Assembly (NCBI GenBank): GCA_964247055.1
Contig: OZ176052.1
Coordinates: 8,432,001-8,496,000, forward strand
From: Paragordius varius
Taxonomy: Eukaryota > Animalia > Nematomorpha
Length of the DNA: 64,000 nucleotides
Direction of reading: 5' to 3'
This document shows, piece after piece, positions 4,460 to 60,900 of the stretch; position 1 is the first letter of the stretch; every line of letters starts with the position of its first letter. Under the pieces are notes generated by a model that was not told the origin of the DNA, did not search any database, and saw nothing but the letters and a program-made list of their open reading frames with translations. The translations under genes and the position numbers were made by a program.

Positions 4460-6408
4460 ATGTTTATTGATTCTCACACATTGTGTGCGAAGAAAAACGA
4501 TTTAATTTCAAATCCCCATAAGGCAAAATACCACTTTACACCTATTCATAATTTCGTAAATGAATTGCAATTGAAGGATCATGCAAATATCTTCGCAAAT
4601 CAAAGAATAAAAGAAGCCAAACTCAGAGCTGATAGTCATTTGCATCCATTGAAGATAAACCCAGTGATTGCTAAAACATTGAGGTTGAGTGATTATACGA
4701 ATATCATTGCCAATCAAATAATAAAAGAGGAATACAAGACTGATTTGCATCCATTGGACATAAACCCAGTAATCGCTAAAACACTAAGGTTGAGGGAATT
4801 GGCAAATCTCATTATAAATCATATTATTAAAGATGTCAACAAAGCTGAAAGTCATTTGCACCCATCAAAGATAAACCTAGTGATTGCTAAAACATTAAGG
4901 CTGAGTGATTATACAAATATCATTACAAATCAAATAATAAAAGAAATATACAAGGCTGATAGCTATTCGCCATCGGAGATAAACCCAGTGATTGCGAAAA
5001 TAATAAGGCTGAGAGATTTTACAAACATCATTGCAAATCAAATAATAAAAGAGGTCAACAAGGCTGATAGTCATTGGCATCTATCGGACATAAACCCAGT
5101 GATCGCTAAAACATTAAGGCTGAGGGATTTTACGAACATCATTGCAGATCAAATAATAAAAGATGTTAAACTCAAAGCTCATAGTCATTTGCATCCGTCG
5201 GGTATAAACCCAGTGATTGCTAAAACATTAAGGCTGAGTGATTTTACAAATATGATTGCAGGTCAAATCATAAAAGTTGTCAATAAGGGTGATGGTAATT
5301 ACCCATCGGATCTAAGCCTAGTGATAGCTCAAACATTAAAACTGAGGGATTTTACAAATAACATTGCAAATGAAATAATAAAAGAGGTCAACAAGGCTGA
5401 TAGTCCTTTACACCCTACGGAGAACCCAGTGATTGTTAAAATATTAAGGCTGAGGGAATTTACAAATATCATTGCAAAACAAATAATAAAAGAGGTCAAC
5501 AAGGCTGATAGCCATTTACATCCGTCGGACATAAACCCAGTGATTGCCAAACCATTAAAATTAAAAGTTTATACAAATACTAAAGCAAATCAAATGTTTA
5601 AAGATTCTATAAATATAGATCATCCGCATAATCAAACACAAAAAAGTTTTGATAAAAGATTGAATATATCTAAACCGGAGAACACTTCCGATTATAGTAG
5701 TAACAAAAGCCTAACTCTCTCCAATACTGCACTAAAATCAAGAAAGAAAGTAAGATGGATAGATGAAATAAAACCAAATGAAAGTGAAATGGTGAACAAT
5801 AACGCTAATCCATCACAACTTTACAATTCTTTCCAAGCGAAAGTTTTTCCGAATTGCGATAGCCAATATAAGAATGTAGAGGGATGTACGTTGAGATATA
5901 AATATGAATTAAAGACAGAACTACGGAGAATACGGACATCTGGTAATATATAATATTTCAATTGTATCATCCTTTAATCAAATTTATCATTAGCATACAT
6001 TTTATTAGTGCTATAGGATGACATTTTTCAGGTTTAATCAATTAATTTTAAATTGGTTAATTATATTTAGGAAAGGAAATGATTCCTCAAACATCAGATA
6101 AAGAATACAGACTGATGAAACAACTTGTCGAAATAGCAGATAATGAATCGGTGCGATCGTTTCATTCCAGACAAACCAACAAGTATATTTTAATTTATTT
6201 TGTGAGAAAATTTTCTATTTACTCAATATAAGTTGTTTTTTTTGTTATTTATTTTGGAAGGCGGCCAGCTCCAAGTATTTCCTCCATTCTTGGCAAGAGT
6301 AATTGTGCAAACAATACAACATCACAGGCACCTCTTAAAAGCATTTTGCGTAACAGTCAAGGCTCGTTAAACAAACGGACTTTTTGGAATAAAAAAATAT
6401 GGATATAA
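4460..6408 (+). CDS. Unknown ~580-aa tandem-repeat protein, copy 1. Exons 4460-5942, 6071-6182, 6261-6408. Putative PKA/PP1 scaffold
   Basis: The 497-aa ORF has a GT donor at 5943 (tct g|gtaata). AG acceptors at 6070 and 6260 and a donor at 6183 keep the frame (1743 nt = 581 codons, TAA 6406-6408). The same splice sites are kept in copy 2. The function is inferred from motifs only. Confidence 0.8.
4570..5610 (+). repeat. Coding tandem repeat: about 10 units of 35-38 aa (about 105-114 bp), consensus ADSHLHPSDINPVIAKTLRLRDFTNIIANQIIKEVNK
   Basis: Directly visible in the translation and in DNA (ataaacccagtgattgctaaaacattaaggctgag recurs). The equivalent array in copy 2 is at about 11165-12195. 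Confidence 0.95.
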
Positions 6409-11052: not shown

Positions 11053-12999
11053 ATGTTTATTGATTCTCACACATTGTGTGCGAACAAAAACGATTTAATT
11101 TCAAATCCACATAAGGCAAAATACCACTTTACACCTATTCATAATTTCGTAAAGGAATTGCAGTTGAAGGATCATGCAAATATCTTTTCAAATCAAAGTA
11201 TAAATGCAGCCAAACTCAGAGCTGATATTCAATTGCATCCATTGAAGATAAACCAAGTGATTGCTAAAACATTGAGGCTGAATGATTATACGAATATCAT
11301 TGTAAATCAAATAATAAAAGAGGAATACAAGACTGATTTGCATTCATTGGACATAAACCCAGTAATCGCTAAAACACTAAGGTTAAGGGAATTGGCAAAT
11401 CTCATTATAAATCATATTATTAAAGATATCATTAAAGCTGAAAGTCATTTGCACCCATCAAAGATAAACCTAGTGATTGCTAAAACATTAAGGCTGAGTG
11501 ATTATACAAATATCATTACAAATCAAATAATAAAAGAAATATACAAGGCTGATAGCTATTCGCCATCGGAGATAAACCCAGTGATTGCGAAAATAACAAG
11601 GCTGAGAGATTTTACAAACATCATTGCAAATCAAATAATAAAAGAGGTCAACAAGGCTGATAATCATTGGCATCCATCCATAAACCCAGTGATCGCTAAA
11701 ACATTAAGGCTGAGGGATTTTACGAACATCATTGCAGATCAAATAATAAAAGATGTCAAACTCAAAGCTCATAGTCATTTGCATCCGTCGGATCTAAACC
11801 CAGTGATTGCTAAAACATTAAGGCTGAGTGATTTTACAAATATGATTGCAGGTCAAATCATAAAAGTGGTCAATAAGGGTGATGGTAACCCATCGTATCT
11901 AAGCCTAGTGATAGCTCAAACATTAAAACTGAGGGATTTTACAAATAACATTGCAAATGAAATAATAAAAGAGGTCAACAAGGCTGATAGTCCTTTACAC
12001 CCTACGGAGAACCCAGTGATTGTTAAAATATTAAGGCTGAGGGAATTTACAAATATCATTGCAAAACAAATAATAAAAGAGGTCAACAAGGCTGATAGCC
12101 ATTTGCATCCATCGGACAATATCCCAGTGATTGCCAAACCATTAAAATTAAAAGTTTATACAAATACTAAAGCAAATCAAATGTTTGAAGATTCTATAAA
12201 TATATATCATCCGCATAATCAAGCACAAAAAAGTTTTGATAAAAGATTGAATATATCTAAACCGGAAAATACTTCCGATTATAGTAGTAACAAAAGCCTA
12301 ACTCTCTCCAATACTGCATCTAAATCAAGAAAGAAAGTAAGATGGATAGATGAAATAAAACCAAATGAAAGTGAAATGGTGAACAATAACGCTAATCCAT
12401 CACAACTTTACAATTCTTTCCAAGCGAAAGTTTTTCCGAATGGCGATAGCCAATATAAGAATGTAGAGGGATGTACGTTGAGATATAAATATGAATTAAA
12501 GACAGAACTACGGAGAATACGGACATCTGGTAATATATAATATTTCAATTGTATCATGCTTTAATCAAATTTATCATTAGCATCCATTTTATTAGTGCTA
12601 TACGATGACATTTTTCAGGTTTAATCAATTAATTTTAAATTGGTTAATTATATTTAGGAAAGGAAATGATTCCTCAAACATCAGCTAGAGAATACAGACT
12701 GATGAAACAACTTGTCGTAATAGAAGATTTAGCAAATCAATCGGTGCGATCATTTTATTCTAAAACCAACAAGTATAATCTAATTCATATTGTAAGAAAA
12801 TTCTCTTTTTACAAAAATTTAATTTGTTTTTTTTGTTATTTATTTTAGAAGGCTGCCAGCTCTAAGCATTTTGTCCATTCATGGCAAGGGTAATAGTGCA
12901 CACAATACAACATCACAGGCACCTCTTAAAAGCATTTTGCGTAACAGTCAAGGCTCGTTTAACAAACGCAATTTTTCGAATAAAAAAATATGGATATAA
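11053..12999 (+). CDS. Unknown ~579-aa tandem-repeat protein, copy 2. Exons 11053-12529, 12658-12772, 12852-12999
   Basis: 495-aa ORF plus the same two introns as copy 1 (1740 nt, TAA 12997-12999). All net exon length differences from copy 1 are multiples of 3 (-6, +3, 0). Confidence 0.8.
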
Positions 13000-15120: not shown

Positions 15121-16608
15121 GTTACTGCCTATCTTTACTTTGCTTATTTTTCTCAAAATCGTGTTAAATATGTAACATTGTGAATATTCCTAGAACCACT
15201 AAAGAAGCATGAGTGCTGCCCTGTTTTGAAACAGATAAAAGCGTAATAGGACGGTAAAGGTCGTATTTTATGGATAGCATAGAGTACATATGGCCGTTTT
15301 TAGGACACTTAGATTCCTACTCGCTCCGCACAACAGTGACAATATAAATAATTATAATATTCTTCCTGCAATCACCATATTTTAATCTTATAATAATTAA
15401 ATGTGTAAAGTAAAAATCTTTACCTTTTATATTATATGTCCAGTAAAAGCAATTTACCTTTGCATGATCTGTTATCTGACAATAATTAATGAAAAACCAG
15501 CAATGTATATCATATACTGTATTTTGTGAAATGATTCCTTTCTATTCGCTAAGCAATTTAGTTACATATTTGCAGTATGCATTTTATTGTATGTTAAGTA
15601 ATTTTTTTGTCAGTTAAATTACATAAATGGTTTATCAAATGCGTAAAATACTGCTCCACAAAATTATATCGTAGTACACATATGAAAGAGGATTGACCTG
15701 AGAATTAACATAGGCTTAATTTGATGGATATTTTTGAATGCTAAGTTTCGAAAATATTATAGCAATTTATGTTAATATTTGAATATAGTGTTGATATATA
15801 TTAATAAATAGATGAATAGGTATTTTGAGAATATTTATGTTAAATCCTAATTAAATTTAATAATTAATATTTTTCAACATGATAAATACCTGTATTAATC
15901 AAAATTGGTATTTTTTTATATAGATGTAATTACTAATTAAAAAACACAGGTAAATATATATAAGTTTGTAAATATCTTAGATTTTTGTTGTTTTAGTTTT
16001 TTAGGTTTTGCATTGTTAATTAAAATTATATATTTTAAATATTTGACCTATTAATATATACATAAAAATATTTGGGTTAAAAATTTATGTAGATTATTCT
16101 TTTGTTTTTATGTTTTGTATTGTTTTTATTAATTTTGAAGAATTTCAGACATTTTAATAAATAAATGTAAAAATTACGGTTTTTAATAAATTTAGTTAAT
16201 ATATTTTTTTGTTTTATTTATCATTGTTAATCGTAATTAAATACTACATATTTTAAACTAATAGTATCAATATATATTTGATCAGGATATAGTTTTGAGG
16301 ATACACTATTGTCAATTTCAAGAGTGAAAAGTAAAAGATTGAAATTACACTTCAATTATGAGCGCAATGCCTAAATTATATATTAAGAATTAAGTATCTA
16401 AATAGTTGTAGATTAATTGATTGTAATCTTTAATGTTTTTAAATATCGATCAGTTTTGAGAATAGAGCCAAAATCAATATTGCGCACAACATAAACTTTA
16501 TATATCAATTTTCATATCATCTGCATAAGCGCTGTTTTGATATACATGCATTAAACAATCTGATATTTATGTTTAATTTTATTTTTATTATATTTTTAAT
16601 TTTCACAG

Positions 16609-19600
16609 TCAGGGCGAGTATAAATAATTATATTCCGGATCAAATTCACTTATCGTTTGGGGGTAAAATCACTTTTAATTTTAGACATTAATTCCACCAT
16701 TATTAAAGTTGTTTGGATAACACACGCTAGAGTACCAGATCCCTTTGTTAAATATAAAAAACACGATGAAAATATTTGGAGGTCCAAACACGGAACTATT
16801 TCAGAGTTTAAATCCGATCATTATTTGGAATATGTATATCAGGCTTCCCTAGACGATTTGTTTCCAAACACTACTTATTGTATTTTTTATTTTTAATGAA
16901 AATTAGATTATCATTGTGGTAGCCCAAAATTTGGATGGAGTGACGAATCATCATTTACAACTTTACCTCAGCCATATAAAAATGAAGAAAATTGGTCAGT
17001 AAATCTTATAATTTTTGGCGATTTGGGGGTTGGTAACGCTCAATCGCTAACTGATATTCAAGAAGAAATTTTTCAAGCTAATCCCTTATCTTTTCCAAAA
17101 CGACATAAAACTCTGAGTAATTTAATTGCTTATCACATAGCAATTTGAGCCATTATTTACTTTAAAGAAATGAGTTTTTTAATAAACGTGACCTAATTTA
17201 AACAAATTTTACCCCTTTTTTCGTTATCTCAAAGCTTTTTCTTTTATGTCTGGATTGAGCTTTTGACCAGTATTTAGTCTTTATGCAGTTATTTACAGTC
17301 ATAAGTTAATAATACCATTAAAATGGTATATTATGATTGTGTGTTAGAGCTTAGTCGCGTAGCGACTCTTAGCCCTCTTAGAAATCAGCTTTTTCCATTC
17401 CAGACGATCTTCAGACTTTCGAGTTATTTGGTAAAGGATTGGTAAATGATTTTATAATATTGAGCTACCGATTTTTGGGGCGGCCTCTTTTGCGAGTACT
17501 ATCGACCAACCTAAGGAGAATGTTTTATCAATTGGATCGTACAATATGGCCAAGATATTTTAATTATAGATTACTATATTGGTTTGATGAAGTTAAGTTA
17601 TGAATTAGAGATGTGGCCTTTCCAGAAGATGCCCAGAGTTTTCCGAAAGCACCACATTTGAAACGAGTTGAAGCGATTTTTGTCGGTGGTATACACATGA
17701 TTCAGAACCGTAAATATTGACGGGGTAAACCATCGCCTTTAGGATGGCGAATTTAATTAAAAAACTAATTTTTAATAATGTCATTAATCTATATATTTAT
17801 AAAAATGGAAAATGCTGGCTTTGTGATCTGGTACAGGAAAACCGGTAGACCCATTACCCAAAAAATATAATCATTAATGAATGCCCCGACAATAGCTTCG
17901 CCCTTTTTTTGAATAAAGCCCCCAGTTCGGGCCTACCGAGTAAAAAACGTTTTTTTTAAAAAAAACAAAAGTCCACAAAAATCGTGTCTTTTACAATTTT
18001 CCGGAAGACGTGTTGGACCATTCGATTTCAAATGTGATTTTTTTAGTTATTTTCGATTGCGCCAAACATAATCGTCTCGCTTTTTAAACTTAGGCCCTCT
18101 TTTTACCCGCTCCCCCCGTAAAATGCCATTTTTTAAAAAAAAACAAAGTCCACAAAAATAATTTTTTGTTTGTATTTATTTGCCCAAGGTATTTCAAATA
18201 ACCACCCCCCCCCCCCCCCCCCCCAGAAGTCCGAAGGACTTCCTCGGGCTGCGTAGCAGCACGAGATTTACGCTAGTATAATAATAATTAACCAACTGAT
18301 AATGTTTAAAATTTCTCAATTTTTAAATTAAATCTTCTATATATTAATTTTATGTGTTTAAGATAATATTTTTTATCCTAACCGTTTTTTCCAATTCCAA
18401 GTCCAATTTTTTACCTCTCGTTCCGGTTTCGTTATTTAGTTTTTCAAGAAAAACGTTTTTGATCAAATAGTGCTAGTAGTGGGTTTCAGTCAAAAGGTTT
18501 TAATTCCGGGTTTTTTTTAATTAGGATAGCACATGTAAAAAAAGTGTCTCAAAAACACATATTATAAACCATAAATTTAAAAATTGAAAAGTATTCAAAT
18601 ATAAGAAAAACAAGTTTTACCTTGTATTAATTATACAAAATAAATGATTAATAAAAGGTTTTTCTAACCGCTGCCAAAAATTGCCGTCTATTAGGCTGTA
18701 AAGTTATGTTAATGGTCCCGTTCCACATAAACAGTTAGAGTTTCGATCCTTGATTTTTTAAGCGGTCAGCAATATAAGAACATTTATAAAACCCGTCCGA
18801 ATTCTAACTCTAATTACCATATTTTTAATGTATTTACTCTATTTTTGTGTTTAGATACGACTAAAGCAAAATCTCCAACCGACGGTGTAATTAACGCTAT
18901 TCTCCATGTCGGAGATTTTGCCTACGATATGCATCAAGATGATGGACTCAGAGGGCGGCTTTTTATGCGACAGATCCAACCAATCGCCTCCCGCGTTCCG
19001 TATATCACGTGCCCTGGAAACCATGAACATCACGGGAATTTTTCTCATTACAAACATAAATTGGGTGCTGGTATGCCTGGAGATCCTGAAGGGGCCAACA
19101 TGTTTTATAGGTTTGAGCAGTTATTTAGTTAGTTAGATACAAGTTTTTGTCGGAAAGTTCAAAAATAGTATATTATAGTACTTTTATTGTTGGCCATTTC
19201 ACATTATTATTTGAGCAATTGGCAATTCTATAGCGTATGGATAAAAAACAACAAATGTTTGAAATCAAACATTTTTCCCCATCTTACAACATTAAATTTT
19301 TAATTATAAACAAAATTTGTTTTATATCATAGGCTATTATATTGCTAATTGGCCAACAATCTGGGTATTTTAATTTTAGATAACTTTATGGTTATATGTT
19401 TTTTATTTATTGTTTTGTAAATTTAACTTTTATATTTTGCATAAAGGTGTGAAAACCCTTCGTAAAAAGTCATTTTTAAATATTATGATTAATATAAGTT
19501 TGTTTTAATCTTGCTAATTGATGTCAATTTAATGATTTGTATATACAATTTGAGATTGGGAATTGCGCCTTTTTTTATTCCTCCTACTCCTCATCTTTAT

Positions 19601-20527
19601 CAATATCGATCATAAAAAAATTAGGAACCCAAATGCCTATAACTAAATGCATTTTATTTTATAAATTTTTTTTTATATTTGAACCGATAAAGCATATACA
19701 TTAAAATGTGTCTATTTTACTTATAGTTTCAATATGGGTCCAGCGCATTTTATTTCTTTTTCTACGGAATATTATTTCTTTTGGGAATATGGGTTTTGGC
19801 AAATAAAGAAGCAATACGAATGGCTTGAAGCCGATTTAAAGGTTATTTCAATATGTAACCCTTAAAACAATTTGTTAGACACGCATTTAATTTGTAAAAA
19901 TATTATATTGTTATTTACTTTAAATAAGAGTGATATTGACATACTAAAATATTCTAATATGCTAAAAATTATAGATTTTATGCGTAGGTATTTATTTAAA
20001 ATTTTTTATCATAATTAACACAATAAGGAAGCAACGAAACCAGAAAATCTAAAATTACGACCATGGATAATAACATTTGGCCACAGACCTATGTATTGTA
20101 GCAATTGGAATACCGATGATTGCACTAAAAATAGTAGCATAGTAATTATATATCAATTTTTAGGTTGATTTCTCATTTAAGTTTGTATTTAACATTTGTG
20201 GTTTTTTAACTGCGTTTACTATATCAGATAGCCTTTTTTATTTTAATATTACCTTTTTTTCTCGTATAATTATATCAATAATTCCGATTCATTTATAAAA
20301 TGATATACATTGATAATTATATTATTTTTTATATGGAATATAAGTAATAACTATTTTTTGAACAAAAACATCATATATCTTTAAAAATTCAATTAGTAAT
20401 TTTTTTTTCAATTTTAAAACAATTAGTCATGCAATTCCTTTTTATTTTATCTAATGTTATTATTTAAAAGCCACTATTTGATTCTAAAATTAAATGCGCT
20501 TAAATTTATGTAATAATTTGTTTAATA

Positions 20528-20575
<48 letters not shown>

Positions 20576-23030
20576 TATTTTAATCTGTTTATAGTAACGA
20601 ATCCAAAATGTCAATAAAATATTATTTCTATATATATGTGTGATATTTTCATTTTAGGTACGAACGGGTATCCCATTTTTAAGATGGTATGGATTGGAAT
20701 CTCTTTTTTACAAGTACGGTGTTGATATTGAATTATGGGCGCATGAACATAATTATGAGAGATCATGGCCTGTTTACAATAAAAAGGTTTTTATTTTAAC
20801 AAAATTTTTAAATAATTTATTCTTTCGTAACCGTATCCTACCTTTTTTAAAAATGTGTATATTGATTTGGGCGATTTCATTACTGTAGTTCTATATAATT
20901 GTTCTTCTCCCTCATAAAAAAGGTGCCTAATTATCGCATGATCATTATCACACTTTCTTTAGATTTATATAAGATCGGGAATTTTATTAAACAACTTTTA
21001 ATAATTGCGTGACATTGCAAACAAAAAAATCTTGTTGAAATGTATTTAGGCAGAATCCTGATTCTCATGGTCCATTAATAGTTTACGGGTTATTTAAGGT
21101 TTTTTTCAACTCTTATAGTGTGTTTCTTATACTAAATACTACACGTGTCAAAATAAAATTACTTTTCGCAAAAAATTTTGCCAATGTTTTGAATAAAAAT
21201 TTATGTTTATTTAATAATCTGGCATATTCTTGCAATGCCGGTTTTAAGCGTTTATTTTAAGGTACCCATTTCATCGGATTGAATTTTAATGCCGTTGTTT
21301 TCCATTTTTAATTTAATCTACATAAAAATAATTTGATTGAAAGCGATCAACTTTTGCTAAAACTTAATTATACCTAATATGCGCTAAATTTTCAGCATTT
21401 CTGATTTAGATATAATAAAAGTTATTCCGTTTTTTAGACGCATAAGCGATTGTTGATACATCTACCAAAATATACCTCTTTTAGGAAATTTTAAAAATTT
21501 GGCGTCTGTGTATTAACTTAAAATATTAATATTTGAACTACTTTTAATATTAATATTTATTAACGTTTATAATCATGTCTCTCCATAATTAAGTTGACTG
21601 AAGCCTCATATTCATTAAATTGAAAAATAATAACTTAACCATAATAAAATTATTTTTTTTCACGATTTAAAAAATATATTGTAATAAACTATTCACAGTC
21701 AAGCAAATATATTTAATATTTGGTTATATTTAATTTTACGCATTACAATTTTAATAGGTAATGAATCATACTGACTTATCTGATCCATATATACAGCCAC
21801 TAGCTCCTATCCATATAATAACTGGAAGCGCAGTAATCATTTTTTAATTAATATCCCGCAATTTGTAGAACATATATACCGAATAAAATAAACAATCTAG
21901 CGCTTCCTTACCTTTTAAATTTATAGCCTATATGGCTTAAATCCGTAAAAAAAATAAAATAAAAAATAATTTTGGTAAAATCATTATATTTAAATATTTT
22001 AAGATAAGAGTTATAAAGTTTTGAAATTTTTAGAGCTTAAAATCAATTAAAAGAAACAGCTAATTTTTCCTAATGTATTGCAATATAATTAATTGCATTT
22101 AAATTAATTTTTACATAATATATTTCGATTTGTAAATTTTTAGCGATTTATTAAACATCCAGAAAAGCATTATCGGTAAAAAGTTTGAGATTAGGATTTT
22201 TTACATATTTTATATTTTTTTGATTAATGCGCCTAGGCCATCATATACTTTTAATAATTGGCCCAATATTAGATTTTTTAGATGAATTTATTTTGGGGGT
22301 AAAAAACCCAAAAGGTGATTGAAGTTTTTGATTATGATAAATATAAAAATAAATTAACCCAAAAATTAATATTTAACATTAGTTTAGCGAGCATGATAAT
22401 TTTGAACAAATGCTTTAACAACTCGTATAATTTTAACTTAAATTATTTATTTCTATTTGTAAAATTTTTAGCAAGTCTTTAAGTATCAATTTTAATTATA
22501 TAATAATATTATGTAGGTTTTACGTAATACAATTTTTATACTTTTATATTTCTATAATAAATGTTTTTATGAAGGATTGAAATTAAGTTTTTTGTACACC
22601 CACATAAATTAATAGGGTTTTTTAATATATAGTGACGTTTTTTAATATTATCTTTAAATATATTTAACGGTATGTTGTGGATTTTTTTATCTTTTATTTA
22701 TTTAAAAAATATAGGGTTGTTCTGAAAAACATGATTCTTTTGAACAAAAACAACCCGAATGGTCAGCATTTCGAAGCCTCGATTATGGTTATACAAAGAT
22801 GAAAATAGTTAACAAAACCCATTTATATTTAGAGCAAATTAGTGTCGATCAAGTAAATATATTAGCCAAAATAGTTTGTTGTAATTTTTTAATTTTGTAA
22901 TAGTTTGATTTAACTATACATTATTCTGAACTATTTATGAAATTTTTATATATTTTTTATAATTTAATAGGGTAAAGTGATCGACAACATTTGGGTCATC
23001 AAAAGAAAAAACCTCATTGGTAATGAATAG
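16609..23030 (+). CDS. ACP7: Purple acid phosphatase (acid phosphatase type 7). Exons 16609-16662, 16685-16879, 16907-17116, 18855-19110, 19727-19841, 20028-20141, 20658-20786, 21758-21832, 22715-22852, 22971-23030. First (signal-peptide) exon not located
   Basis: All five PAP metal-ligand motifs are intact: FGDLG, HVGDFAY, PGNHE, FGHRPMY, WAHEH. N-terminal PDQIHLSFG...VVW...YHCGS...GWS and C-terminal IITGSAGC and GYTKM match ACP7-type enzymes. The exon sum of 1346 nt plus 1 nt from the missing exon gives 449 codons. Confidence 0.93.
17335..17752 (-). mobile_element. Decayed RTE-clade retrotransposon 3' fragment in an ACP7 intron
   Basis: The minus strand reads LKAMVYPVNIYGSES...GRPKNR...EDRLEWKKLI, resembling RTE KAMVFPVVLYGCESW...GRP..RW...DR..W. 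It is frameshifted. Confidence 0.75.
17788..18276 (+). mobile_element. Non-autonomous Helitron (489 bp) in an ACP7 intron
   Basis: A|TCTATATATTTATAAAAATGG...hairpins...CTAG|T, with a 20-nt poly-C run at 18205-18224. Confidence 0.92.
20533..20572. repeat. (TA)n microsatellite in an ACP7 intron
   Basis: Direct. Confidence 0.9.
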
Positions 23031-23071: not shown

Positions 23072-23429
23072 TTATCCGCGTGGTAAGTTAAGTTTTGCAT
23101 ATGCATTTTGGCGTCTCTTGTGCATTTTACGAATGCGTATCCAGTATTCAGCAGAATCAATTTCTATTTGTTCAAATGGTATTTTTTCTAGTCTTAATTC
23201 CCAAAGCCAGTTGGGATATTCAGAGTCACTTTTTATCGGAATATCTGGCTCGTCTTTGTGGTAGTTAGCACCACAAACAAAGTTACAAAGTTTCTCAGGA
23301 TCTGTTTCAACATCATATAAAACTCTTTTGGGTTTTTTATTTATTGGTGGCAATTTATCTAAATAAAATAATAATTATACTTTGAAGAACATTTGTAGAA
23401 TATTTTTTGACGAAATTAAAAATTCGCAT
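23072..23429 (-). CDS. MRPL54: Mitochondrial ribosomal protein mL54. Exons 23429-23381 and 23358-23072 (about 111 aa)
   Basis: VETDPEKLCNFVCGANYHK...IKSDSEYPNWLWEL...YW matches the mL54 family. The ORF-track start is a TTG. The only nearby ATG exon (MRIFNFVKKYSTNVLQ, presequence-like, with an in-frame stop just upstream) joins in frame through a 22-nt GT-AG intron. Exon 1 is less certain than the gene identity. Confidence 0.85.
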
Positions 23430-23981: not shown

Positions 23982-24976
23982 TCTATATATTTATAAAAAT
24001 GGAAAATGCTGGCTTTGTGATCTGGTACAGGAAAACCGGTAGACCCAATCAAATCCAAATATCGAAAAAATATAATCATTAATAAATGTCCCGACAATAG
24101 CTTCGCCCTTTTTTTGAAATAGGCCCCCAGTTCGGGCCCACCCCCTATGAAAAACGGGTTTTTTTTTGAAAACAGAAGTCCACAAAATCGTGTTTTTGAG
24201 AAAATTTTCCGGAGAACGTGTTGGACCATTCAATTTCAAATACGATTTTTGTTTACTTATTTTCGATTGCGCCGAACATGGTCGAGTCACTTTTTTGATT
24301 TAGGCCCTCTTTTTACCCGCTCCCCCCGTAAAATGCCATTTTTTTCAAAAAACAAAGTCCACAAAAATAATTTTCTAAATCAATTTTTCGCCCTAGGTAT
24401 GAGACCGTAAAAATTCAATAAAGATTCCACGTATTCCCTGTTAAAAGGCAAAAATTTTAGTCCACCGTTTATTTGATGATAGCTGCTGGGTAAGGAGCTA
24501 CCCGCTAAAAACTGATTTTTCATATAACTTTGTGATCTCTTTCCGGAAAACCGGTGAACCCATTCAAATCCAAACATCGAAAAAATTTTATCATTAATGA
24601 ATGCCCCGACAATAGCTTCGCCCTTTTTTGGAATTAGGTCCCCAGTTTGGGCCCACCCCGTGTGAAAAATGGGTTAAGTCAATTTTTTGGAGAACGTGTT
24701 TGACCATTCAATTTCAAATACGATTTTTGTTTACTTATTTTCGATTGCGCCGAACATGGTCGAGTCACTTTTTTGATTTAGGCCCTCTTTTTACCCGCTC
24801 CCCCCGTAAAATGCCATTTTTTTCAAAAAACAAAGTCCATAAAAATAATTTTCTAAATCGATTTTTCGCCCTAGGTATGAGACCGTAAAAATTCAATAAA
24901 GATTCCACGTATTCCCTGTTAAAAGGCAAAAATTTTAGTCAAGCGTTTCTTTGATGATAGCTGCTGAGTAAGGAGT
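23982..24976 (+). mobile_element. Helitron copy with 5' TC end and two internal tandem units, lacking its own 3' end
   Basis: Same 5' end and internal sequence as the other copies. It stops at ...gagtaaggagt, with no hairpin or CTAG until the mini-copy 60 bp downstream. Confidence 0.85.
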
Positions 24977-25036
24977 ATCTATTATATGTATCGCATGTTA
25001 AAAGATATATGGATATTAAAACATTAATTATGGTAA

Positions 25037-25177
25037 TCTATATATTTATAAAAATGGAAAATGCTGGCTTTGTGATCTACAGGAAAAACGGTAAACCCAT
25101 TCAAATCCAAACTTAGAACCCCCCCAGAAGTCCGAAGGACTTCCTCGGGCTGCGTAGCAGCACGAGATTCACGCTAG
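25037..25177 (+). mobile_element. Minimal 141-bp Helitron
   Basis: A|TCTATATATTTATAAAAATGG...gaagtccgaaggacttcctcgggctgcgtagcagcacgagattcacgCTAG|T. Confidence 0.92.
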
Positions 25178-25279
25178 TTATGAAATAAATATATTCCAAT
25201 AAAAAAATGTATCATGAATCTCATAGTGCTTTTGGAGGGCCTACAAGGGTAAGAAAGTTTTATATATGTTTGTGTGCGC

Positions 25280-36500: not shown

Positions 36501-37109
36501 GCGAAATGCAACTAAGTAAAAATCGTAGGAGGGGGAGGGAGGAGGAGTCATTATTAGATATAGAAAGCAACGCATAAGGGGGAAAGATTGGATATATAGG
36601 GAGCAAGTAAGCAAGCTAGCAAGCAAACAAGTAGTTGTTGCACATCATTATCGTATATAAATACGTTTATTTTAGTGTGTTGTTTACGATAATAAAAAAT
36701 ATTCAATAAAAATCTATATTAAATAACCATTTTTTGGTGTTATGCTTGAATATACGACTTTTATTGATAAAAATTGATACTTCATATAACCTTTGACTTC
36801 TGCTCTTCTGTGTTCCGCACACCCCCTTTGTCTCCTCGTCTAAGTGTTTATATATAACTAAATAATAAACTTTGATTCTGCCATTTTGGTTAACAGATTG
36901 ATTATTAAATTTATTGCATACCTGTTCTATACCAATAATCATAACAATATCTTTTCATCACTTTTTCGATTTTAAAATTTTTGAGCGATGGATATGATAA
37001 ATAAAAGTTTAGCATTTTAATTATATTTAATGTACCGCATATCATAATATATATCTTTTTTACAACATTATTGTATGGTTTATAGTTGAATTCAAGCTAC
37101 CTGAAAGCT

Positions 37110-40100
37110 ATGGAAGATGGTAAAGTTGATATCACAAATTCGGCATCGTCGCAAAATCTCACAAACTCCAAGGAGGATGAAAATAAAAATGTAACTAAAC
37201 AGAATCCACAAAAATCCCTTACGAATAATCACAACAATAAAAACAACAATCTATTTAGCAGTCTTCTTGTGATGAATGGATGCAATAATAGTAGTGGTAT
37301 AATTGGCGATGATAAATTAAGCATAAATGCAATAAAAACTGATGTTGAAAACATACAACCACCACCACCTGCTCTTGTTGAATATAATAATAATAATGTT
37401 GATATCAACAAAAATGAGGTCGATATAAATGACACTGTTAATAATATAAATGCTATTGCTAGCACAAATGTAAGTAATGGCACATATGAACTACGAGACC
37501 AGCAACAGAAAATAAATATTTCGAATATGCTTGAATCAAACATGGATATCACATCCATTCTCAATGAAATTAATGCCGCAGGCCAACCAACATCATCGCA
37601 AAAGTCAACGACACAAACTGGGTCCTCAGTCTCTTTCTCTCCCTCTAAAAAATCTTCAGATAACGTTGGTACTAATCAAGACATCAATATTGAAGAGTTT
37701 ATCGCTAAACTTACCAATAGTTTTGGTAATAAAGCGGAAGATGGCTCAAACTCTCACAATGATTCATTAGTTGTGGATGAAAATATATTCGCCAATTCAA
37801 TTACAACAACAGATGGGAACAATGTTAATCATTCTTCCGATGCTTTTATCCCCTCATCATCATCAAATTATTCCACAAATGCGACACCCGGAAGTTCTTC
37901 TGGTGTTTCCAAATACCCAGTTTTAGCGGTGGATGATGAAAGTGTTTCAGCTCCAAGTACAAGGGCTAAACTTACGCCCACCGTTTTTAGTGATAAAATT
38001 TGTTTGGCCCGCGCTCTGCAAGCCGGAGACCCGCGGTTAAAGCTGGTACAAAGAGGGGGCAACGTTAAAAGTCCTGTTTGGAAGATATTTCGTGTCATAA
38101 CGTTCGAGGGGAGAAAGACGAACCATATAGCATGTTATAGATGCCTTCAGGTATGTTATAGCAATCTAAAAATAAATGTAATTTTATTGTTTTGTTTAAT
38201 GTCACATATTTTCTGTTTAATTTTTAGTAAGTACATTATAAAGAATGTGCCACACTTAAGTATTTTACTGTGTTCGCCGAATATATTTAACCAAAAATTT
38301 TTGAAAATTTTATAACTATATTAGAGCAATTTACATTGATCCTTCATATATCAAATTTTCATTATTTATTAATAAATTGTCCTTAAAATTTTGTCAAAGG
38401 ATAAAATTTAAATTTTTTTTATTGAACATGTTTGGCGAAAACCATTGACACAACAATCTACAATAAAATAATGTTTATTTATTAAAAAATTGACCATGTT
38501 AGAGTAAAATAACTCAGGTGTCCTTTGATTATTTATAAAAATGAAAGTTTAACAGTTCATGCCGTACGTAGTTTACCGTTTTTAATGCAAAATGTTCCTT
38601 ATAAAAATGTAACTATTGGCCTAATTAATTTCATTCTAATGAAATTATTACGATACTCATATAGGTTTATAGGTATGATTCACATCACATGGGCACCTCT
38701 AACCTCTATCGCCATAAATGTGTTAACAATACAAATAATGAAAAAGCTGTTAACAGTGTTGATAATTTAACCCAATCTCCACTATCCATGAGTCCGGAAA
38801 AGACTGTCACTAAAAATGTGGATACATCTGAGCCCCAAAGCAATGATGATACAATAGGTAAATAAATTTATGCTATTATTTATCCTAAAGTTTTAAAGCG
38901 TAAAATTTTTGTGAGGAACAGTATTTGACAAGGTTATTATGGAAATGACTTCCCTTTAACCCAAAATTTATTTGAACTGCAAATAATAAATAATTATTTT
39001 GTGTTGATTTAAACCCATATAAAAGGATAAAATTTAAACATACGGGCTTGGATTTATTAGAACGATAACAAATACCTATAACATCGGTTTTAACACTATC
39101 AAACATAAATTATTTCTAATAGTACTGCATTTTTGCCCTTAAATTAATTTCTTCAAGCCTAAATTACTTTTTACCCAAATTAAATTCACCTTTGGATCGT
39201 GATAATATTTTATAAAACTAAGCCAATGCCCTTTAATTAATATTAGTCATTTCGATTTAGTATTGATTAATTAATATTGTTTGTTTTTATCTTTTTTTAT
39301 AATAATTTAGGTTTTTGTAAGCATTAAATACATTAACCTTTTTTCTTAACTTCCCGGTTCATTGTTTTTGTTAGCCGATAAATAAACACGCATTTAAAAT
39401 TATTTCAAACAGGTAAATTTAACAATGGATTTTTTATGGTTTCTGTATTTTGTAAAAAATTACACCAGGTGTGTAAAAATATAAATAATGGTATAAATAT
39501 ACCGATTCTCAAAATATTTTTTAAAAAATATTTTTTATTAACAGGAGAAGAAAAAATATATGTAGATGATTCCAAAAATTCCGAGAATCTTACCATTAAA
39601 GAAGAACAATCCGAAAATGACAGTGATGATTATAAACCATATGTTACAAGCAAATGTAACTATAAATAATTTCATTAAACTTATTTATTTCAATAAGTAA
39701 AATTTTAACCTAAGTTAGCTAAGAAAGTTAAATATATTAAAATCTAAGTTTAAGTGAAAAATCTTGAAAGGCACAATTATACTTATGAATGCAAGTTCTC
39801 AGAATAAACAAATAAGCGCAGATATTGTGTAATTTTAGATAAAATAAAATAACTCAATTCAGTAAAAAAACACTATTTATTACCTTTGCGCACGTTTATC
39901 AATTTTTGCCATAAAATTGTTATAAAATGTTTTCCTAAGTATTATATTATTCAATTTTTTAAAATGATATACCTATACAATTTGCTTCACTATATATATA
40001 GCACAACATGAAAAACAACAGGCTTCCCAAGTCAGTACTACACCTGTCCAATCAACTAATCGAAGAAAGAGGAGTATAATTTCATCTCTTGCGCAAAGAA

Positions 40101-43100
40101 AACGTTTGAAATTACCTAAATTACAATCTAGTTTACAAAGTATGTTTTTTATGCCCTAAAATTATTGAACGTTTGGAAATACGACCTAAAAATTATATAA
40201 ATATCTATATCAATCGGTTATTTAACCATTTTGCATTGTTTCGATGCATTAGTTTTTATAAGAAAATACAATTATATAAAATTTACTTTCTTAACTAATA
40301 TTGGATGAAAGCATTCAGCGGTTGGATTTTAAGCCGATTAAACGTCTTTTTGTCTATTTATGAACATTTATATATCATTTTTATAATTTGTCAATTAATT
40401 ACAGAACACGTCCCAAACCCATATCCCACAAACTTGGTCAATAATAGTTCAGAAACCGCTACAGATGAAATGGATGAGGCTATTATAGAAAACAATTTAA
40501 ACACCTCTGATTCTAATAGTAAAAACTTATTTTAAATCTATAATAGTAATATTACACTTAAATACAACTATATATTTACCATTTTTGAATATTTTTTTAT
40601 TGTTTTTTGAAAAAAATTGGTTAGCATAAATGATGAAAGAATATAACTAAATAAATTTTTCTTATAAACCAAACTTTTATTTAACTCCTTAAAAATGCTT
40701 TGATTTAACTAAAAACAATTTATTAGATTCCTACAAATTTTGGCAGAAAATCACTTGTTTGGGTTTGATGAAAGATTTTATGGATGAAATTAAATCGAAT
40801 CTCGACACCTGCGAGCAAACTATTGCCGCTTCAATCAAACATACAAACATCGAAAATAACAGCATTGATGATAATACCGTTTCATGTAAGTTATAGTTTA
40901 CACTAATTTTTTAGTTTTGGTATTATTAATAAATACTAAAATATATTTTAATTTATTATAGGTTGTAGGAAATTGAATGTAATTGTTAACGCTTTGGGAC
41001 TTAATCAAAGTTTAAAATTGTTATTCAAAAAATACCGGCGTTCCGTCCTCTTGGAACAAGAGAAAAATCGGAAAGAATTATTGGGTAACTTAATTTTTTA
41101 TTTAATCAGTTTTATACAGGTACATAGAGCTTATAATGAACCATATTGTGTTTTCTAGATTTACGACAAAAATTATTGTTAAAACAACACAAAAGTGAAA
41201 ATTTAAAGATTAGGGATGCATTTTTCAAAGAACTCATGGTTGAACATGACCAGATTTTGGCCCCAAACTCTGTAAACGTATCCAATAGCCTAACGAATAA
41301 TTGTGCATTATCACCTGATTTATTGTCACTTCAAGCTTTGATTGGAGATACGAATATGAACGCACAATCGAATTCTTTAGTATACAATGCTAATAATAAT
41401 GTTAATTTTGCGTTAAATACAACCATAAATAATAATGGTAATAGTCTTTTGACTGATAAAAATCTCAATATGCTGTACAACAGTTATTACAAAACATCTA
41501 TGTATTCACAGGCCAATACGGGTTCGACATCATCGTTTATGTCCACCAAAACGTTAAATGTAAGTATAAATTAAATAATCATAATCATATATGCAGGAAA
41601 CATCTAAATATATTGCCCTAATTTAATGTATTATATCTATATAAATTAGTTATAGTCATAAGTCTTTACCGGTTTTTTGGTAAAAAATACTTAATTTGGA
41701 ATTTGTTTTTTGATATCTGCATATTTCGCCCCTCTCTCTGTTAATATTTGATATGCCAGATGTTTGACTTTTGCCAAAAACTATTCGTCAAGGCATTTTA
41801 CAGTTAATTGTAAAAGTGCTGCTCAACGAGAGTGTTTTCCAGCCACGTAAAGGTAAGGTATGATGCTGCCAGATCAGGAGAATACAGCGAACGCGGAAGA
41901 ATTTTCAAAGTATCTTTCACTGTTTTGCTATGTGAGACGGAGCATCGTCATGTAGCAAGATCATTTTGCTTTGTCTTTTGGCGCATTCCGGTTGTTTTTC
42001 AATTAATACATGGTTATTTTAGTCATTTAATAGCGATAATGTTGTGTATGAACAATTTTATGGAATTTTATGATTTTATAAACAATGCCGCTTTGACACA
42101 TAGTATGTTTGTTGAAAAGATTTGGCCTGTGGATGATGGCTTCACAAGGTAACAGCCACGATTACTGTTTTCTCATAAGTCACAATTCGGTGTAAAAATG
42201 TTTTTTTCGCGATGTTGAGGCATTTCACAAGTCTCTGCGATTTTCGATTTGACGTTCATGCAAATTGTGTGGACCGATTTTATTGGTCCCTCGCATTGCT
42301 CGTAGACAATCTATTGATTATTTTTTGTGATATATGCGATTCTGCCATATAACGGTGAGTTTCAGTTGGGTCATCATCCAATAATCTTGCACTTGATCGT
42401 TTTTGCAGTGTGCGTTCTTCCAACACACTCTTTCACATTAAATGTGTCAATCGATTGAGCATGATCACCATATGTTTCAGCTAGCAAAAACTAACTTTCA
42501 ACATTTCTTCTGATGATGCCTATGTTTTTTCTGGTTCAACATTTTTCAAGATTCCTGAATGATTGAAGCAAGACTCTAGTTTTTGGTGAACTCAATTATT
42601 TATTTGTTTTATGTGAAGCATGTAGCAAATTAATCGTCTGCGTAGTTTTTTTAATGTCTTCTCTTAAAACTGCAATAAGTTAGGTATACACCTGGATAAA
42701 TATAATATATTATGTAAGTCCCACTTCAGTTTATAATGATTTTTTACTGATAATTATATTTGTTACGTACTCTAGGATATCTTAAAGAGTTTTGATCGCA
42801 CTAATCCAAGAAAAAGCCAAACCTCTAACTTGGATTCCATGATTCTTGCCAAACAACTCAATAATTGGAACGATGTTAGCGGTTCCAAAAATAAATTTGA
42901 AAACTTGAAGATTTTTAACTCTTCGCTCACAAATAAAGAACAGTCCCAGGACAAAAATAAAATTGTTAGTAATAATTTTTTGAACGAAGATTTATTGGAT
43001 ATATCTCGTGCCTTTTTCCCAGACGCATCATTGTTTTCTTCTGCCAACAACAAAAAACAAGCACAACAAAACCAAAACACACTTACGAATGAAAGTTTTA

Positions 43101-44053
43101 CTGCCCAACCTACTCTAACTGTTGCATCAAACACTTCTGAAATACTCAATGCACTGATCGGCGGTGCAAATTATGCCAATTTGAATCTCAATCTCAAAAA
43201 TAATATTGATTCTAATAGGAACAATATGTTGACTCAACAAAGCGTTGGAAATAATCGAAATTCGACTACAAATATTTATGACACACTGAAATCGTTAAAT
43301 TTACCCAACAACAACATCAACAACGGTAATAATAATATAATTAAATCGACATCGTATTATGATACCCTTTTAAATTCAACCGCTCTTACTCTCTTGAGTC
43401 AGTTTAATTTAAGCAATACTAATAGCAATGCGGGTTCAACGCTAAAATCATATATATCTTTTGGTGGCACATCAGCAAATGATAAATCAAATTATTCAAA
43501 CTACACTCAGACAAATACAAATGTCGCAAATATAATGGCAAAACCAAATAATTTGTTACCTTCCCTCCAAAATACAAATTTAACTACCAAAGATTCCCTT
43601 CTAGAAAATTTGTTAAATAACACAAATATTAATCAAGCAATGCTACCAAATAATCTCAATAATCATGTTAATACTCTAAATAACTCTAACAATATGAATC
43701 TCACTACTAATGGAACAATCAATGAAAACGAAAAAATCAATCACCTTAACGCAAATTGTGAACAGAATTCCAAGGATTTTGCCAGTAATTATACCACGCC
43801 AACTAAGATTGATCCCACCACACTAACCCTTAATACTGTAAATGGTGTGTCAAATGGTTCGTCCTCGCCCTTAGATTCAAATGTTAATGACAAAAATCTA
43901 ATACTTCTTAAAAGCCTGCGGAATATATTATCACCAAAAACTTCAGCACCTTCAAGTATCATCACCCAATATATTAACACCTCTGCAAATGAATCAATCG
44001 AAACTACCGGGAAAGCAACTACAAATAATGATACAGCATCGATTTCTCTTTAA
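37110..44053 (+). CDS. BED-zinc-finger protein (~1185 aa, Asn/Ser-rich), probable transcription/chromatin factor. Exons 37110-38150, 38665-38857, 39545-39655, 40002-40139, 40405-40518, 40727-40885, 40962-41084, 41159-41559, 42776-44053
   Basis: Spliced BED finger KSPVWKIF...IACYRCLQ|VYRYDSHHMGTSNLYRHKC. All nine exons are GT-AG and phase-compatible (3558 nt = 1186 codons). Basic NLS-like RRKR and RKRLK are present. The 5' end may extend through the acceptor at 37085. Confidence 0.8.
41644..42696 (-). pseudogene. Second mariner relic, antisense in the last intron of the BED gene
   Basis: The minus strand gives MILLHDDAPSHIA and LYSPDLAAS. TIR remnants are gtcataagtctttaccgg (41655) and the reverse complement ccaggtgtatacc at 42683-42695. 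Confidence 0.85.
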
Positions 44054-57958: not shown

Positions 57959-60900
57959 ATGGAAGTCGTCTATTACCATTATAAAAAGTATGAAAATTGT
58001 ATAAATAAATAAATAATTTTATAGCTTTTTCGGCACACCTGTAATTTTATAAATTTAATTATATTTTTGTCTTTTGGTGTCAATTTATTAAAAAAAATAA
58101 TGAGTCGTTAATTGTTTAAATTTTAGAACCTTTACACAATCGAGAATTTCAAAACACTTTTTAAAAATTTTTTTCGTCACCATAACGCGTCGAAAAACCA
58201 AAAAATATGTGATTGTCATAAAATTGTTCCCAAACTTTTCGCCTATATCTAACAGTTTTGTCACGTTTTCTCATAATTTGTACTTTATTTGATCAAATGA
58301 GAGGTATAAACTTAGTTGAATTTTTTTATTTAACTTGTCTAAAATTTCTCTTTTATTTTATTTATATCGATATTATTAATATTATTTATTTTATGGTTTA
58401 CGATTGCTAATAAATCTAATTTATTTATGTGCGCGATAAAGTGTCATGGACATTTTGGTTTATTTATATTATTATTATTATTAAATTTTACAACGCAAAT
58501 TTTTTGATTTTTATTACTCCGCTATATATATGTATATAAATCACGGTTTAAACTGTAACATTTTGTTTAAAATATTTTAATATACATTTACAATAAAACT
58601 AAAAATTTTTTAAGGTCAAACACGATTACGACCGTATATTGTGACGATATGGTAACCGAAAATAATAATGATGACAATATAAACTATACGTATCATAAAA
58701 CAAAGGAATATCCTTCGACCCTTCCCCCACATTTTTTAAATCAAAATGGTCCTTACTACAAATCGGATGAAGGAGATGAGTTTTTTCAAAACCCATTGTC
58801 TTATCACAAATACTTTGATGGCCCGCGTAAAAAAGAATTAAACAACAATGAAATTTATAACTTTAAGCAAAATGGAGAAACAAAACCATCCATCTCAAAC
58901 ACTTTAACTAAGAATAATTTAGGGGATTGTAGATCAAACATGTCTCATCACGACACCATGAAAAATATAAACTATGATAGTACTAGCACTTATGATAATT
59001 TTTATAAAACGCATAATTCATCACCCTACAATAAATATTCTAATGGAAAATATAATTCGGTTAACGGTTACCCAACCCAAACATGTAATTATAACCAAAA
59101 GGAATTCGCCCAAACTTACGATCAAAGCGGTTATGATAACGCGAAAAAAATGTTTAAAACTACATCACATCAACTGTCAGATGATACTTATTGGAATCCA
59201 GAAAAGTATCGAAAATTACGTGGAATGGTCGCACCTGTCATGATTAAAATTGCGGAGAAAGGTTTATTATATAAAAGATTTTATAACAAAAGAAATTTTG
59301 TTTAAATTTAGGAAAATGGATTGTGTTTATCATGATTTGTATGTTTAAAATGTTGCTTGCATCTTTGTTTTTTAACGGATAATAAAAGCTGAAACTATTA
59401 TTTTACTTCAATATGTATATTTTTTTATAATCAAATTATCGACTATTCTTAATTATTAATCTCTGCCTTTTACTTTTTAGATTTGGCATTGAAGCACCCC
59501 GTTAAAAAGAATTATTATAATTTTCGAAATGCGCTTAAACGTGGCATAAATGGACACTCTAATACATTTCTCGAGGAACATTCGGATGATCAAATGATTG
59601 GAAATGGTACTTTTGAACCCCGTTACTTGCGTGAAAATGGTAGGGCATATACACTTTCATGTGTTAATAGTACACCAACCTCTAGGAAATCTTATCAACG
59701 CGATAACCACGAACATCGCTATGTCAAGTATGCCATATATAGTTTATTCCAAAATCCAACCAAAATATTAGGTTTTTTGGTATGTTGAAATATTTTATAT
59801 ATTAATTAGAAACTCATTAAATTCAGATTATTGAATTTATTGAAACCATGATATTTTGATAACTAGAAGTAATCTTGTAAAAATAAGGCAAAAACATAAA
59901 AAAATTTACTATACTTCTATAACTATCTTGATTAGCATTGATATAGCTTTACTCGTAAATATTGTTTCTTCTAATTATTAGTGAACATAATGACTATGAA
60001 AGTTCTCCCGAAGATGTCATTTCTCCCTTCCTATCTCCTTGTACGAGTGCCCAGGGAAATGCAAATTCATATAGAAATGTTGCTACCCAATATCAACAAC
60101 TCAGGGCCCCTTACCTCAGACACGATGGATATGAATCGGAATGGCCTAGAAATTGGAATCGAAATCAACGAATTAATTTACAAGAGCTGCTGTTAGCTGC
60201 TAAACATGGCACCACCAATAATAATTACAACTACAACAATTATAACGCAAATAGTAAACGATCAAATTCATTCGTATCAAATATAAATATTAATACAGCT
60301 AATGTTGAACGCAGAAATGATCCACCATATACAAGACGAGATGAGGGAAAATTAATTGACCAAAAATATTATGATGCAAGTTCACCCAACAACGATTTCT
60401 CTAACGATAATGTGCAAAAAAAGGTATACATACTCGTTACCAAGTCAATTTAAAATTTGGTATATATTAAGGTCTAAACCATATGTTTTAAATAAATCTG
60501 TTACTTTTTAATTGTAAATGTGAAAGGTAAAATATAAAACTTAAATTAGCAACCTAAGAATAATTTGTGTATTGATTGAATCCATTTTTCCAATTTTGGT
60601 AAAGATGGTGCTAATTATATAAAATTAAAACGGGTAAAATTTTTATAATATATTATTTTTATTCGTGAAATTTATATTTTAGAGAAGTCAAAGCACTCTT
60701 CCTGCCATGCATCCCAAATATTTACCACCACCAATATACTCGACTCGACCAAATAACCAGGATTTCGCCTTTAAAAACGAATTCAAATGTATAGATGATA
60801 ACAATATAATTTGTTCTAATTCGAACCACCCGAACCATTATTTGCCCAAAAATTATGAGGTTCAAGAATCTGCCCCAAAATACACCAATGGGTGTGAGGA

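Follow-up and report, generated by a model that had tools for sequence, protein, structure and literature searches.

A 27-nucleotide GT-AG segment in an ACP7-like gene of a horsehair worm is very probably a genuine, obligatory spliceosomal intron

Can an animal gene whose introns reach 1738 nucleotides (nt) also depend on the removal of an intron of 27 nt? This question is raised by a 64,000-nt stretch of the genome of the horsehair worm Paragordius varius (GenBank assembly GCA_964247055.1, contig OZ176052.1, positions 8,432,001 to 8,496,000, forward strand; hereafter the window, in whose own numbering positions are given). In the window, a gene resembling ACP7, a member of the purple acid phosphatase family, has its reading frame interrupted by 27 nt at 16880-16906 (+) (GTATTTTTTATTTTTAATGAAAATTAG). 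Introns below about 30 bp were held to be lacking in animals, and among 51 genomes they were found only in myxobolid Myxozoa and in Dicyema japonicum (PMC13644364, Mol Biol Evol 2026). An initial annotation, made from the letters of the window, had described a 27-nt GT-AG segment that interrupts FPNTTY/YYHCGS and carries an in-frame TAA, and the sequence is as it claimed. From the structure of the gene, its alignment with homologues and the intron positions of a relative, we conclude that the segment is very probably a genuine, obligatory and extremely short spliceosomal intron.

The segment begins with GT, ends with AG and lies in phase 1. Without splicing, the frame across it reads ...DDLFPNTTYCIFYF, two stops, KLDYHCGSPKFGW... 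(FPNTTYCIFYF before the stops and KLDYHCGS after them), the stops being the consecutive codons TAA (16894-16896) and TGA (16897-16899). When the 27 nt are taken out, T and AT are joined into a Tyr codon and the protein reads FPNTTY-Y-YHCGS. In tblastn alignments with the homologues P0023, P0124 and P0058, a gap of nine residues falls exactly on the 27 nt (for example NTEYF/YRCGD and GGQYY/YVCGT, with the gap at the slash, against NTTYCIFYF-stop-stop-KLDYHCGS). Similarly, when the Pur_ac_phosph_N profile was run over the genome in six frames, its match (44.4 bits) covered profile positions 11-93 and spanned the 27 nt, including one TAA and one TGA. The exon immediately upstream (16685-16879, 195 nt), in which homology to the purple acid phosphatase N-terminal domain had been noted before, matches this Pfam family (PF16656) at 9.7e-9 over positions 12-74 of 93. 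The next downstream AG would define a segment of 43 nt, whose length is no multiple of three, and shift the frame, in agreement with the initial annotation. Of the other GT..AG pairs in the vicinity, only 16860-16922 (63 nt) keeps the frame, and its use would remove the conserved TxYYYxxG motif.

The model of the ACP7-like gene was built from reading frames and homologue alignment, with a scripted check of every boundary. It has ten exons and 461 codons on the + strand, from the ATG at 16569 to the TAG at 23028-23030 (Table 1), and its nine introns, all GT-AG, measure in order 22, 27, 1738, 616, 186, 516, 971, 882 and 118 nt; in this gene, then, no length falls between 28 and 73 nt, the range that the initial annotation had given as empty for the window. 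The Pur_ac_phosph_N domain (PF16656, 9.7e-9) together with a Metallophos domain (PF00149, 2e-5) places the predicted protein in the purple acid phosphatase/ACP7 family (PF16656 + PF00149 + PF14008), with which it shares the N-terminal domain and the Metallophos motifs. All five phosphoesterase motif blocks (GDLG, GDFAYD, GNHE, GHRPMY and AHEH, read in exons 3, 4, 6 and 7) are kept in open exons; the downstream catalytic motifs are intact, as had been stated. The product would be a secreted-type enzyme of 461 residues with a putative hydrophobic, signal-like N-terminus. The gene is colinear with the ACP7-like proteins of mite, crinoid and corals, and exon 4 has 1221 relatives at E <= 0.001 in a library of 1.84 billion proteins; searches of PDB sequences with exons 2 and 3 gave no matches. 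Relative to its family the protein itself is ordinary, and only the gene structure is unusual. An intact ACP7 copy elsewhere, which the initial annotation had named among the findings that would count against it, was sought by exon and profile searches across the 110.6-Mb assembly (44 contigs). No paralogue or intact second copy was found: in the assembly, each of exons 3 and 4 has its own sequence as its only match; other matches to the N-domain profile were weak and below the cut-off.

We asked whether relatives carry an intron at the same place, a comparison with ACP7 orthologues that had also been proposed. Among full-length relatives, P0023 (XP_074602984.1), an acid phosphatase type 7-like protein of the mite Brevipalpus obovatus, has the highest summed tblastn score, and this protein was mapped exactly onto its genomic locus (L014). 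The mite gene has a phase-1 intron of 249 nt after ANRQY, at the same codon and in the same phase as the 27-nt segment (after PNTTY), and a phase-1 intron of 328 nt after EQIHLSLG, at the codon and in the phase of the 22-nt intron (after DQIHLSFG). Two phase-0 positions are also common to both genes (IITGSA/GC here and IISGAA/GG in the mite; ISVDQ/GK here and ISIDE/HN in the mite), so that introns at matching positions make up four of the nine in the window gene and four of the six in the mite gene. By a rough estimate, the chance that one intron coincides with any of the 6 mite introns among ~1383 positions is ~0.004, and that both micro-introns do so ~2e-5. The two lineages differ in intron length at these sites (328 and 249 nt in the mite, 22 and 27 nt here), and the intron sequences have no similarity. 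The 27-nt segment thus combines GT and AG ends, a frame and a conserved protein that are restored by its removal, and a position and phase common to an orthologue intron, as looked for in a U2-type GT-AG intron. Its removal had been called apparently obligatory, and this finds support in the intact, single-copy gene, the gap in homologues, the mite intron at the same codon and phase, and GT/AG ends like those of the long introns.

The splice signals of the two micro-introns were compared with those of the other introns of the gene. The micro-introns begin with GTAAAA (22 nt) and GTATTT (27 nt), and their 3' ends are TTTTAG and ATTAG. The 5' ends of the long introns are GTAATT, GTTTGA, GTTATT, GTAATT, GTTTTT, GTAATC and GTAAAT, and the 3' ends are TTTAG, TATAG, ATAAG, TTTAG, AATAG, TATAG and AATAG. 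The signals of the micro-introns thus resemble those of the long introns, and they give no hint that micro-introns have a splicing machinery of their own. Seven micro-introns were checked (two in ACP7, one in MRPL54 and four in VPS53; see below), and all seven start with GTA, end with AG and contain TTTA with its A at 15-17 from the 5' end. In the 27-nt intron this motif is extended to TTTAA, with A's at positions 16 and 17 from the 5' end, 10-11 nt from the 3' AG. In the tiny introns of myxozoans and dicyemids, the distance between conserved A residues and the 3' AG grows with intron length (PMC13644364). Their distance from the 5' end is thereby kept roughly constant. From this pattern and the fixed 5' distance seen here, we infer that A16 or A17 is the candidate branch adenosine of the 27-nt intron. 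TTTA may mark a branch site whose distance from the 5' splice site is fixed, whatever the intron length (21-27 nt). A U12-type intron was considered and rejected: the 5' end is GTATTTTT, compared with the (A/G)TATCCTT consensus, and there is no TCCTTAAC branch box.

The other micro-introns were checked within the 264 kb of sequence that was read. One lies in MRPL54, a gene convergent to ACP7 whose exon matches Pfam Ribosomal_L37 at 7.6e-9. Four lie in VPS53, outside the window, where the exons between them cover positions 2-34, 36-85, 86-124 and 126-164 of the Vps53_N profile and are contiguous on it. The 21-nt VPS53 intron has no in-frame stop, and only the contiguity of the profile marks it as an intron. 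None of the seven micro-introns lies beyond roughly nucleotide 650 of its coding sequence; those of ACP7 are the two most 5' of its nine. The 27-nt intron belongs to a local class of introns of 21-27 nt that are found within a few hundred bases of the start of genes and have introns of 0.1 to 1.7 kb as neighbours. The initial annotation had suggested a bimodal size distribution with a separately spliced class of micro-introns. Of this, the size class stands locally, with 21-27 nt in ACP7, MRPL54 and VPS53 against at least 118 nt in the other ACP7 introns, whereas separate splicing has left no sign in the signals described above. An annotation-free count of segments of 23-28 nt that bridge open reading frames (ORFs) in the same 264 kb gave 58 with GT-AG ends against 32-53 for control dinucleotide pairs, a comparison without useful power.

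Several observations weigh against the conclusion that the 27 nt are an obligatory intron. RNA-like sequencing runs with the same species label contain almost no sampled words from the locus, and no run recorded as RNA is among those in which locus words occur. When a same-species protein was sought with exon 4 in the whole protein library, nothing above 75% identity was found, although the records of this genome may be left out there; a word search with the MRPL54 exon returned one 60% relative only, in a collection to which the same limit applies. Expression of the ACP7-like gene is accordingly putative, excision of the 27 nt is predicted from sequence, and the proposed branch site comes from a motif seen in seven introns. 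Intron maps were compared for the mite, a crinoid and a coral, several other homologues being known from transcripts or from contigs without introns. Neither micro-intron site is occupied by an intron in the ACP7-like genes of the crinoid Anneissia japonica (P0169, L021) and the coral Pocillopora verrucosa (P0174, L023); in both, a phase-0 intron lies eight codons further upstream than the 27-nt site. The position of the 27-nt intron is thus common to one arthropod only, and an animal-wide ancestry would go beyond the mite data. Finally, the segment is AT-rich with homopolymer runs, in which an assembly might err.

Of the other explanations, the one that best withstands the evidence holds that the intron is real but mostly retained, so that the stop codon and mRNA decay would make the locus mainly regulated or poorly productive. 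The near absence of locus words from RNA-like runs would fit such a locus, and a length that is a multiple of three with in-frame TAA TGA is the arrangement expected if stop codons police retention. However, the same layout is found in the housekeeping genes VPS53 and MRPL54, which must be expressed, and we regard predominant retention as unlikely.

Alternatively, the gene could be a recently inactivated pseudogene in which the 27 nt are an insertion that happens to start with GT and end with AG. This would account for the two in-frame stops and, again, for the scarcity of the locus in RNA-like runs. It would have to be reconciled, however, with ten of ten open exons, the retention of every catalytic motif and splice sites that are all canonical, in what is the assembly's only purple acid phosphatase gene. 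Moreover, the 27-nt and 22-nt segments both sit at mite intron positions and phases, the 27 nt are not a duplication of their flanks, and the GTA...TTTA(15-17)...AG layout is common to six other micro-introns supported by homology. Inactivation is very improbable on this evidence.

An assembly artefact, in which assembly or polishing collapsed or deleted part of an ordinary, longer intron, is just as improbable. Besides the base composition of the segment, it is favoured by the best DNA runs, which contain only 0.66-0.70 of the sampled words of a 4.2-kb stretch. But what remained after such a collapse would have to be a clean GT...AG unit whose branch-like motif stands at the usual distance, and the same would have to happen, at 21-27 nt, in no fewer than seven conserved intron positions of the 264 kb, while long AT-rich introns and repeat copies of the same gene were assembled normally.

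Excision by an enzyme other than the spliceosome has one point in its favour. Introns of the XBP1/HAC1 type are 23-26 nt long, close to the 27 nt found here. An IRE1-dependent intron of this type was rejected: the region has no paired stem-loops (minimum free energy -6.5 kcal/mol, z = +0.42; 130 of 200 shuffles fold as well), and an Rfam search of it found no family. With no stable fold and no Rfam family, nothing points to another mechanism of excision. Removal by a non-spliceosomal route (IRE1/RtcB-type as for XBP1, or a tRNA-type endonuclease) or translational bypass is therefore barely credible, given also the canonical GT and AG ends, a position homologous to a spliceosomal intron of the mite, and two consecutive stop codons that make read-through unlikely.

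The reading of 16880-16906 as a spliceosomal intron leads to the following proposal. The segment would be a U2-type GT-AG intron that has shrunk to 27 nt, and its excision from the pre-mRNA of the genome's only ACP7-like gene would be needed for the 461-residue enzyme to be made. It would descend from an ordinary intron in the common ancestor with arthropods, because the mite has its 249-nt intron at the same codon and phase. Recognition would presumably be by intron definition and rely on the weak signals that the long introns also have (GTA or GTT at the 5' end, a T-rich tract and TAG at the 3' end), and the branch adenosine would probably belong to TTTAA, at a distance of 16-17 nt from the 5' end and of 10-11 nt from the 3' AG. 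If the 27 nt were retained, their length would keep the frame but TAA TGA would end translation, so that unspliced mRNA would be non-productive.

How does this intron compare with the tiny introns already described? In myxobolid Myxozoa (Henneguya salminicola, Thelohanellus kitauei and Myxobolus rasmusseni) the median intron is 22-27 bp (PMC13644364). The introns of these species and of Dicyema japonicum resemble those reported here in being GT-AG introns of ~20-30 nt at conserved positions, with a 5' signal reduced to about GTA, and in belonging to parasitic lineages. In length and in GTA...AG signals, the 27-nt intron and its 22-nt neighbour agree with the published class below 30 nt. In contrast, tiny size is the genome-wide norm in those animals, whereas here it is found in two of the nine ACP7 introns, the others being 118-1738 nt, and tiny is not the norm in ACP7. 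The tiny introns here also lie in the 5' part of genes and share a gene with introns of up to 1.7 kb that hold repeats, and the lineage is hairworm-like and ecdysozoan, a group not named in PMC13644364. Ciliates such as Paramecium have introns of ~25 nt (PMC5014332). The size is similar, and a length that is a multiple of three with an in-frame stop fits retention being caught at translation in both cases; ciliates differ in having only tiny introns and a different genetic code, compared with standard stops and coexisting long introns here. No report of nematomorph intron sizes was found in the literature searched, and the nematomorph genome papers examined make no mention of introns. What appears to be new here, for one well-supported intron below 30 nt, is the match to a mite intron position together with the fixed TTTA spacing.

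Table 1. Exons and introns of the ACP7-like gene and other micro-introns. Positions are those of the window unless a locus is given.
Feature	Position	Strand	Description
Exon 1	16569..16662	+	ATG start, hydrophobic signal-like N-terminus, PDQIHLSFG; tblastn aligns P(E/Q)Q(I/V)HLS (P0023, P0124, P0058)
Micro-intron 1	16663..16684	+	22 nt, GT..AG, phase 1, directly after HLSFG
Exon 2	16685..16879	+	195 nt, purple acid phosphatase N-terminal domain, PF16656
Micro-intron 2	16880..16906	+	27 nt, GT..AG, phase 1, in-frame TAA TGA; TTTA with A at position 16
Exon 3	16907..17116	+	YHCGSPKFGW...IIFGDLG, first metal-binding motif
Intron 3	17117..18854	+	1738 nt, holds repeat copy 17785-18290
Exon 4	18855..19110	+	GDFAYD, GNHE; Pfam Metallophos 2e-5
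Intron 4	19111..19726	+	616 nt
Exon 5	19727..19841	+	FNMGPAHFISFSTEYY...
Intron 5	19842..20027	+	186 nt
Exon 6	20028..20141	+	GHRPMY motif
Intron 6	20142..20657	+	516 nt
Exon 7	20658..20786	+	WAHEHNYER motif
Intron 7	20787..21757	+	971 nt
Exon 8	21758..21832	+	ends ...APIHIITGSA
Intron 8	21833..22714	+	882 nt, phase 0; position common to mite (IISGAA/GG)
Exon 9	22715..22852	+	GCSEKHD...WSAFRSLDYGYT...ISVDQ
Intron 9	22853..22970	+	118 nt, phase 0; position common to mite (ISIDE/H)
Exon 10	22971..23030	+	GKVIDNIWVIKRKNLIGNE, then stop TAG 23028-23030
MRPL54 micro-intron	23359-23380	-	22 nt, GT..AG, after ATGTTCTTCAAAG; removal gives MFFK-D-KLPPINKK..., with a start codon for the exon
VPS53 micro-introns	L043:2560-3245 (6.7 kb upstream of the window)	-	21, 24, 25 and 26 nt, at the start of the gene

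The repeat in intron 3 of the ACP7-like gene is dispersed: two to three further copies, or partial tandem copies, lie at 24013-25190, ~6 kb downstream, and are 83-100% identical in pieces. The intron 3 copy contains a run of 20 C (18205-18224). At the other end of the gene, the ACP7 stop (TAG 23028-23030, +) and that of the convergent MRPL54 (23072-23074, -) are 41 nt apart, so that the 3' untranslated regions must be tiny or overlapping, though the ACP7 introns carry repeat copies.

The DNA of the window is AT-rich (GC ~0.27-0.29), like that of Gordionus montsenyensis (GC 26.9%). Two ORFs on the + strand, at 4460-5953 and 11053-12540, encode 497 and 495 residues. The first has no Pfam family and the second consists of about ten repeats of a ...NPVIAKTLRLxDxTNIIxNQIIKE... 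unit; matching candidate positions in the ORF-bridging scan hint that the two may be related. Four further ORFs on the + strand (37086-38315, 42830-44053, 58649-59305 and 60707-62842; 218-711 residues) have no Pfam family at E <= 0.001 and may be genes of repeat elements or genes specific to this lineage. On the mitochondrial contig of the assembly (C44; L044:1-4341), COX1 is well conserved (412.7 bits), with six TGA codons read as sense. It is flanked by perfect palindromes without spacer, whose arms measure 131 and 97 nt, and a hairpin unit of 49-52 nt is repeated in tandem. Hairpin-rich mitochondrial DNA of this kind has been described for hairworms (PMC10380579). The palindromes, the GC content and the intron positions in common with the mite fit a hairworm-like ecdysozoan; the well-conserved COX1, and intron positions that match a mite and not a coral, speak against a myxozoan.

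We consider it reasonably likely, with less confidence than we place in the 27-nt intron itself, that in a horsehair-worm lineage GT-AG introns of 21-27 nt are spliced as a discrete class, that their branch A stands ~15-17 nt from the 5' site, and that they are confined to about the first 0.6 kb of genes beside kilobase, repeat-laden introns. This would be the third independent origin of introns below 30 nt in animals, the first in Ecdysozoa, and the first in which tiny size is not the rule. If true, this would suggest that the minimum intron length is relaxed in a position-dependent (cap-proximal) way, and not that the whole genome has been compacted, and intron shrinkage could be limited to the 5' end of genes. 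Hairworm introns of 21-27 nt beside kilobase introns would likewise mean that an animal spliceosome can handle a distance of ~15 nt between 5' site and branch without genome-wide compaction. Standard gene finders and RNA-seq mappers set their minimum intron length above 21-27 nt, so genes such as ACP7 would be broken or missed, and tiny introns overlooked in this way may be one reason why low gene-completeness scores have been reported for assemblies of nematomorphs.

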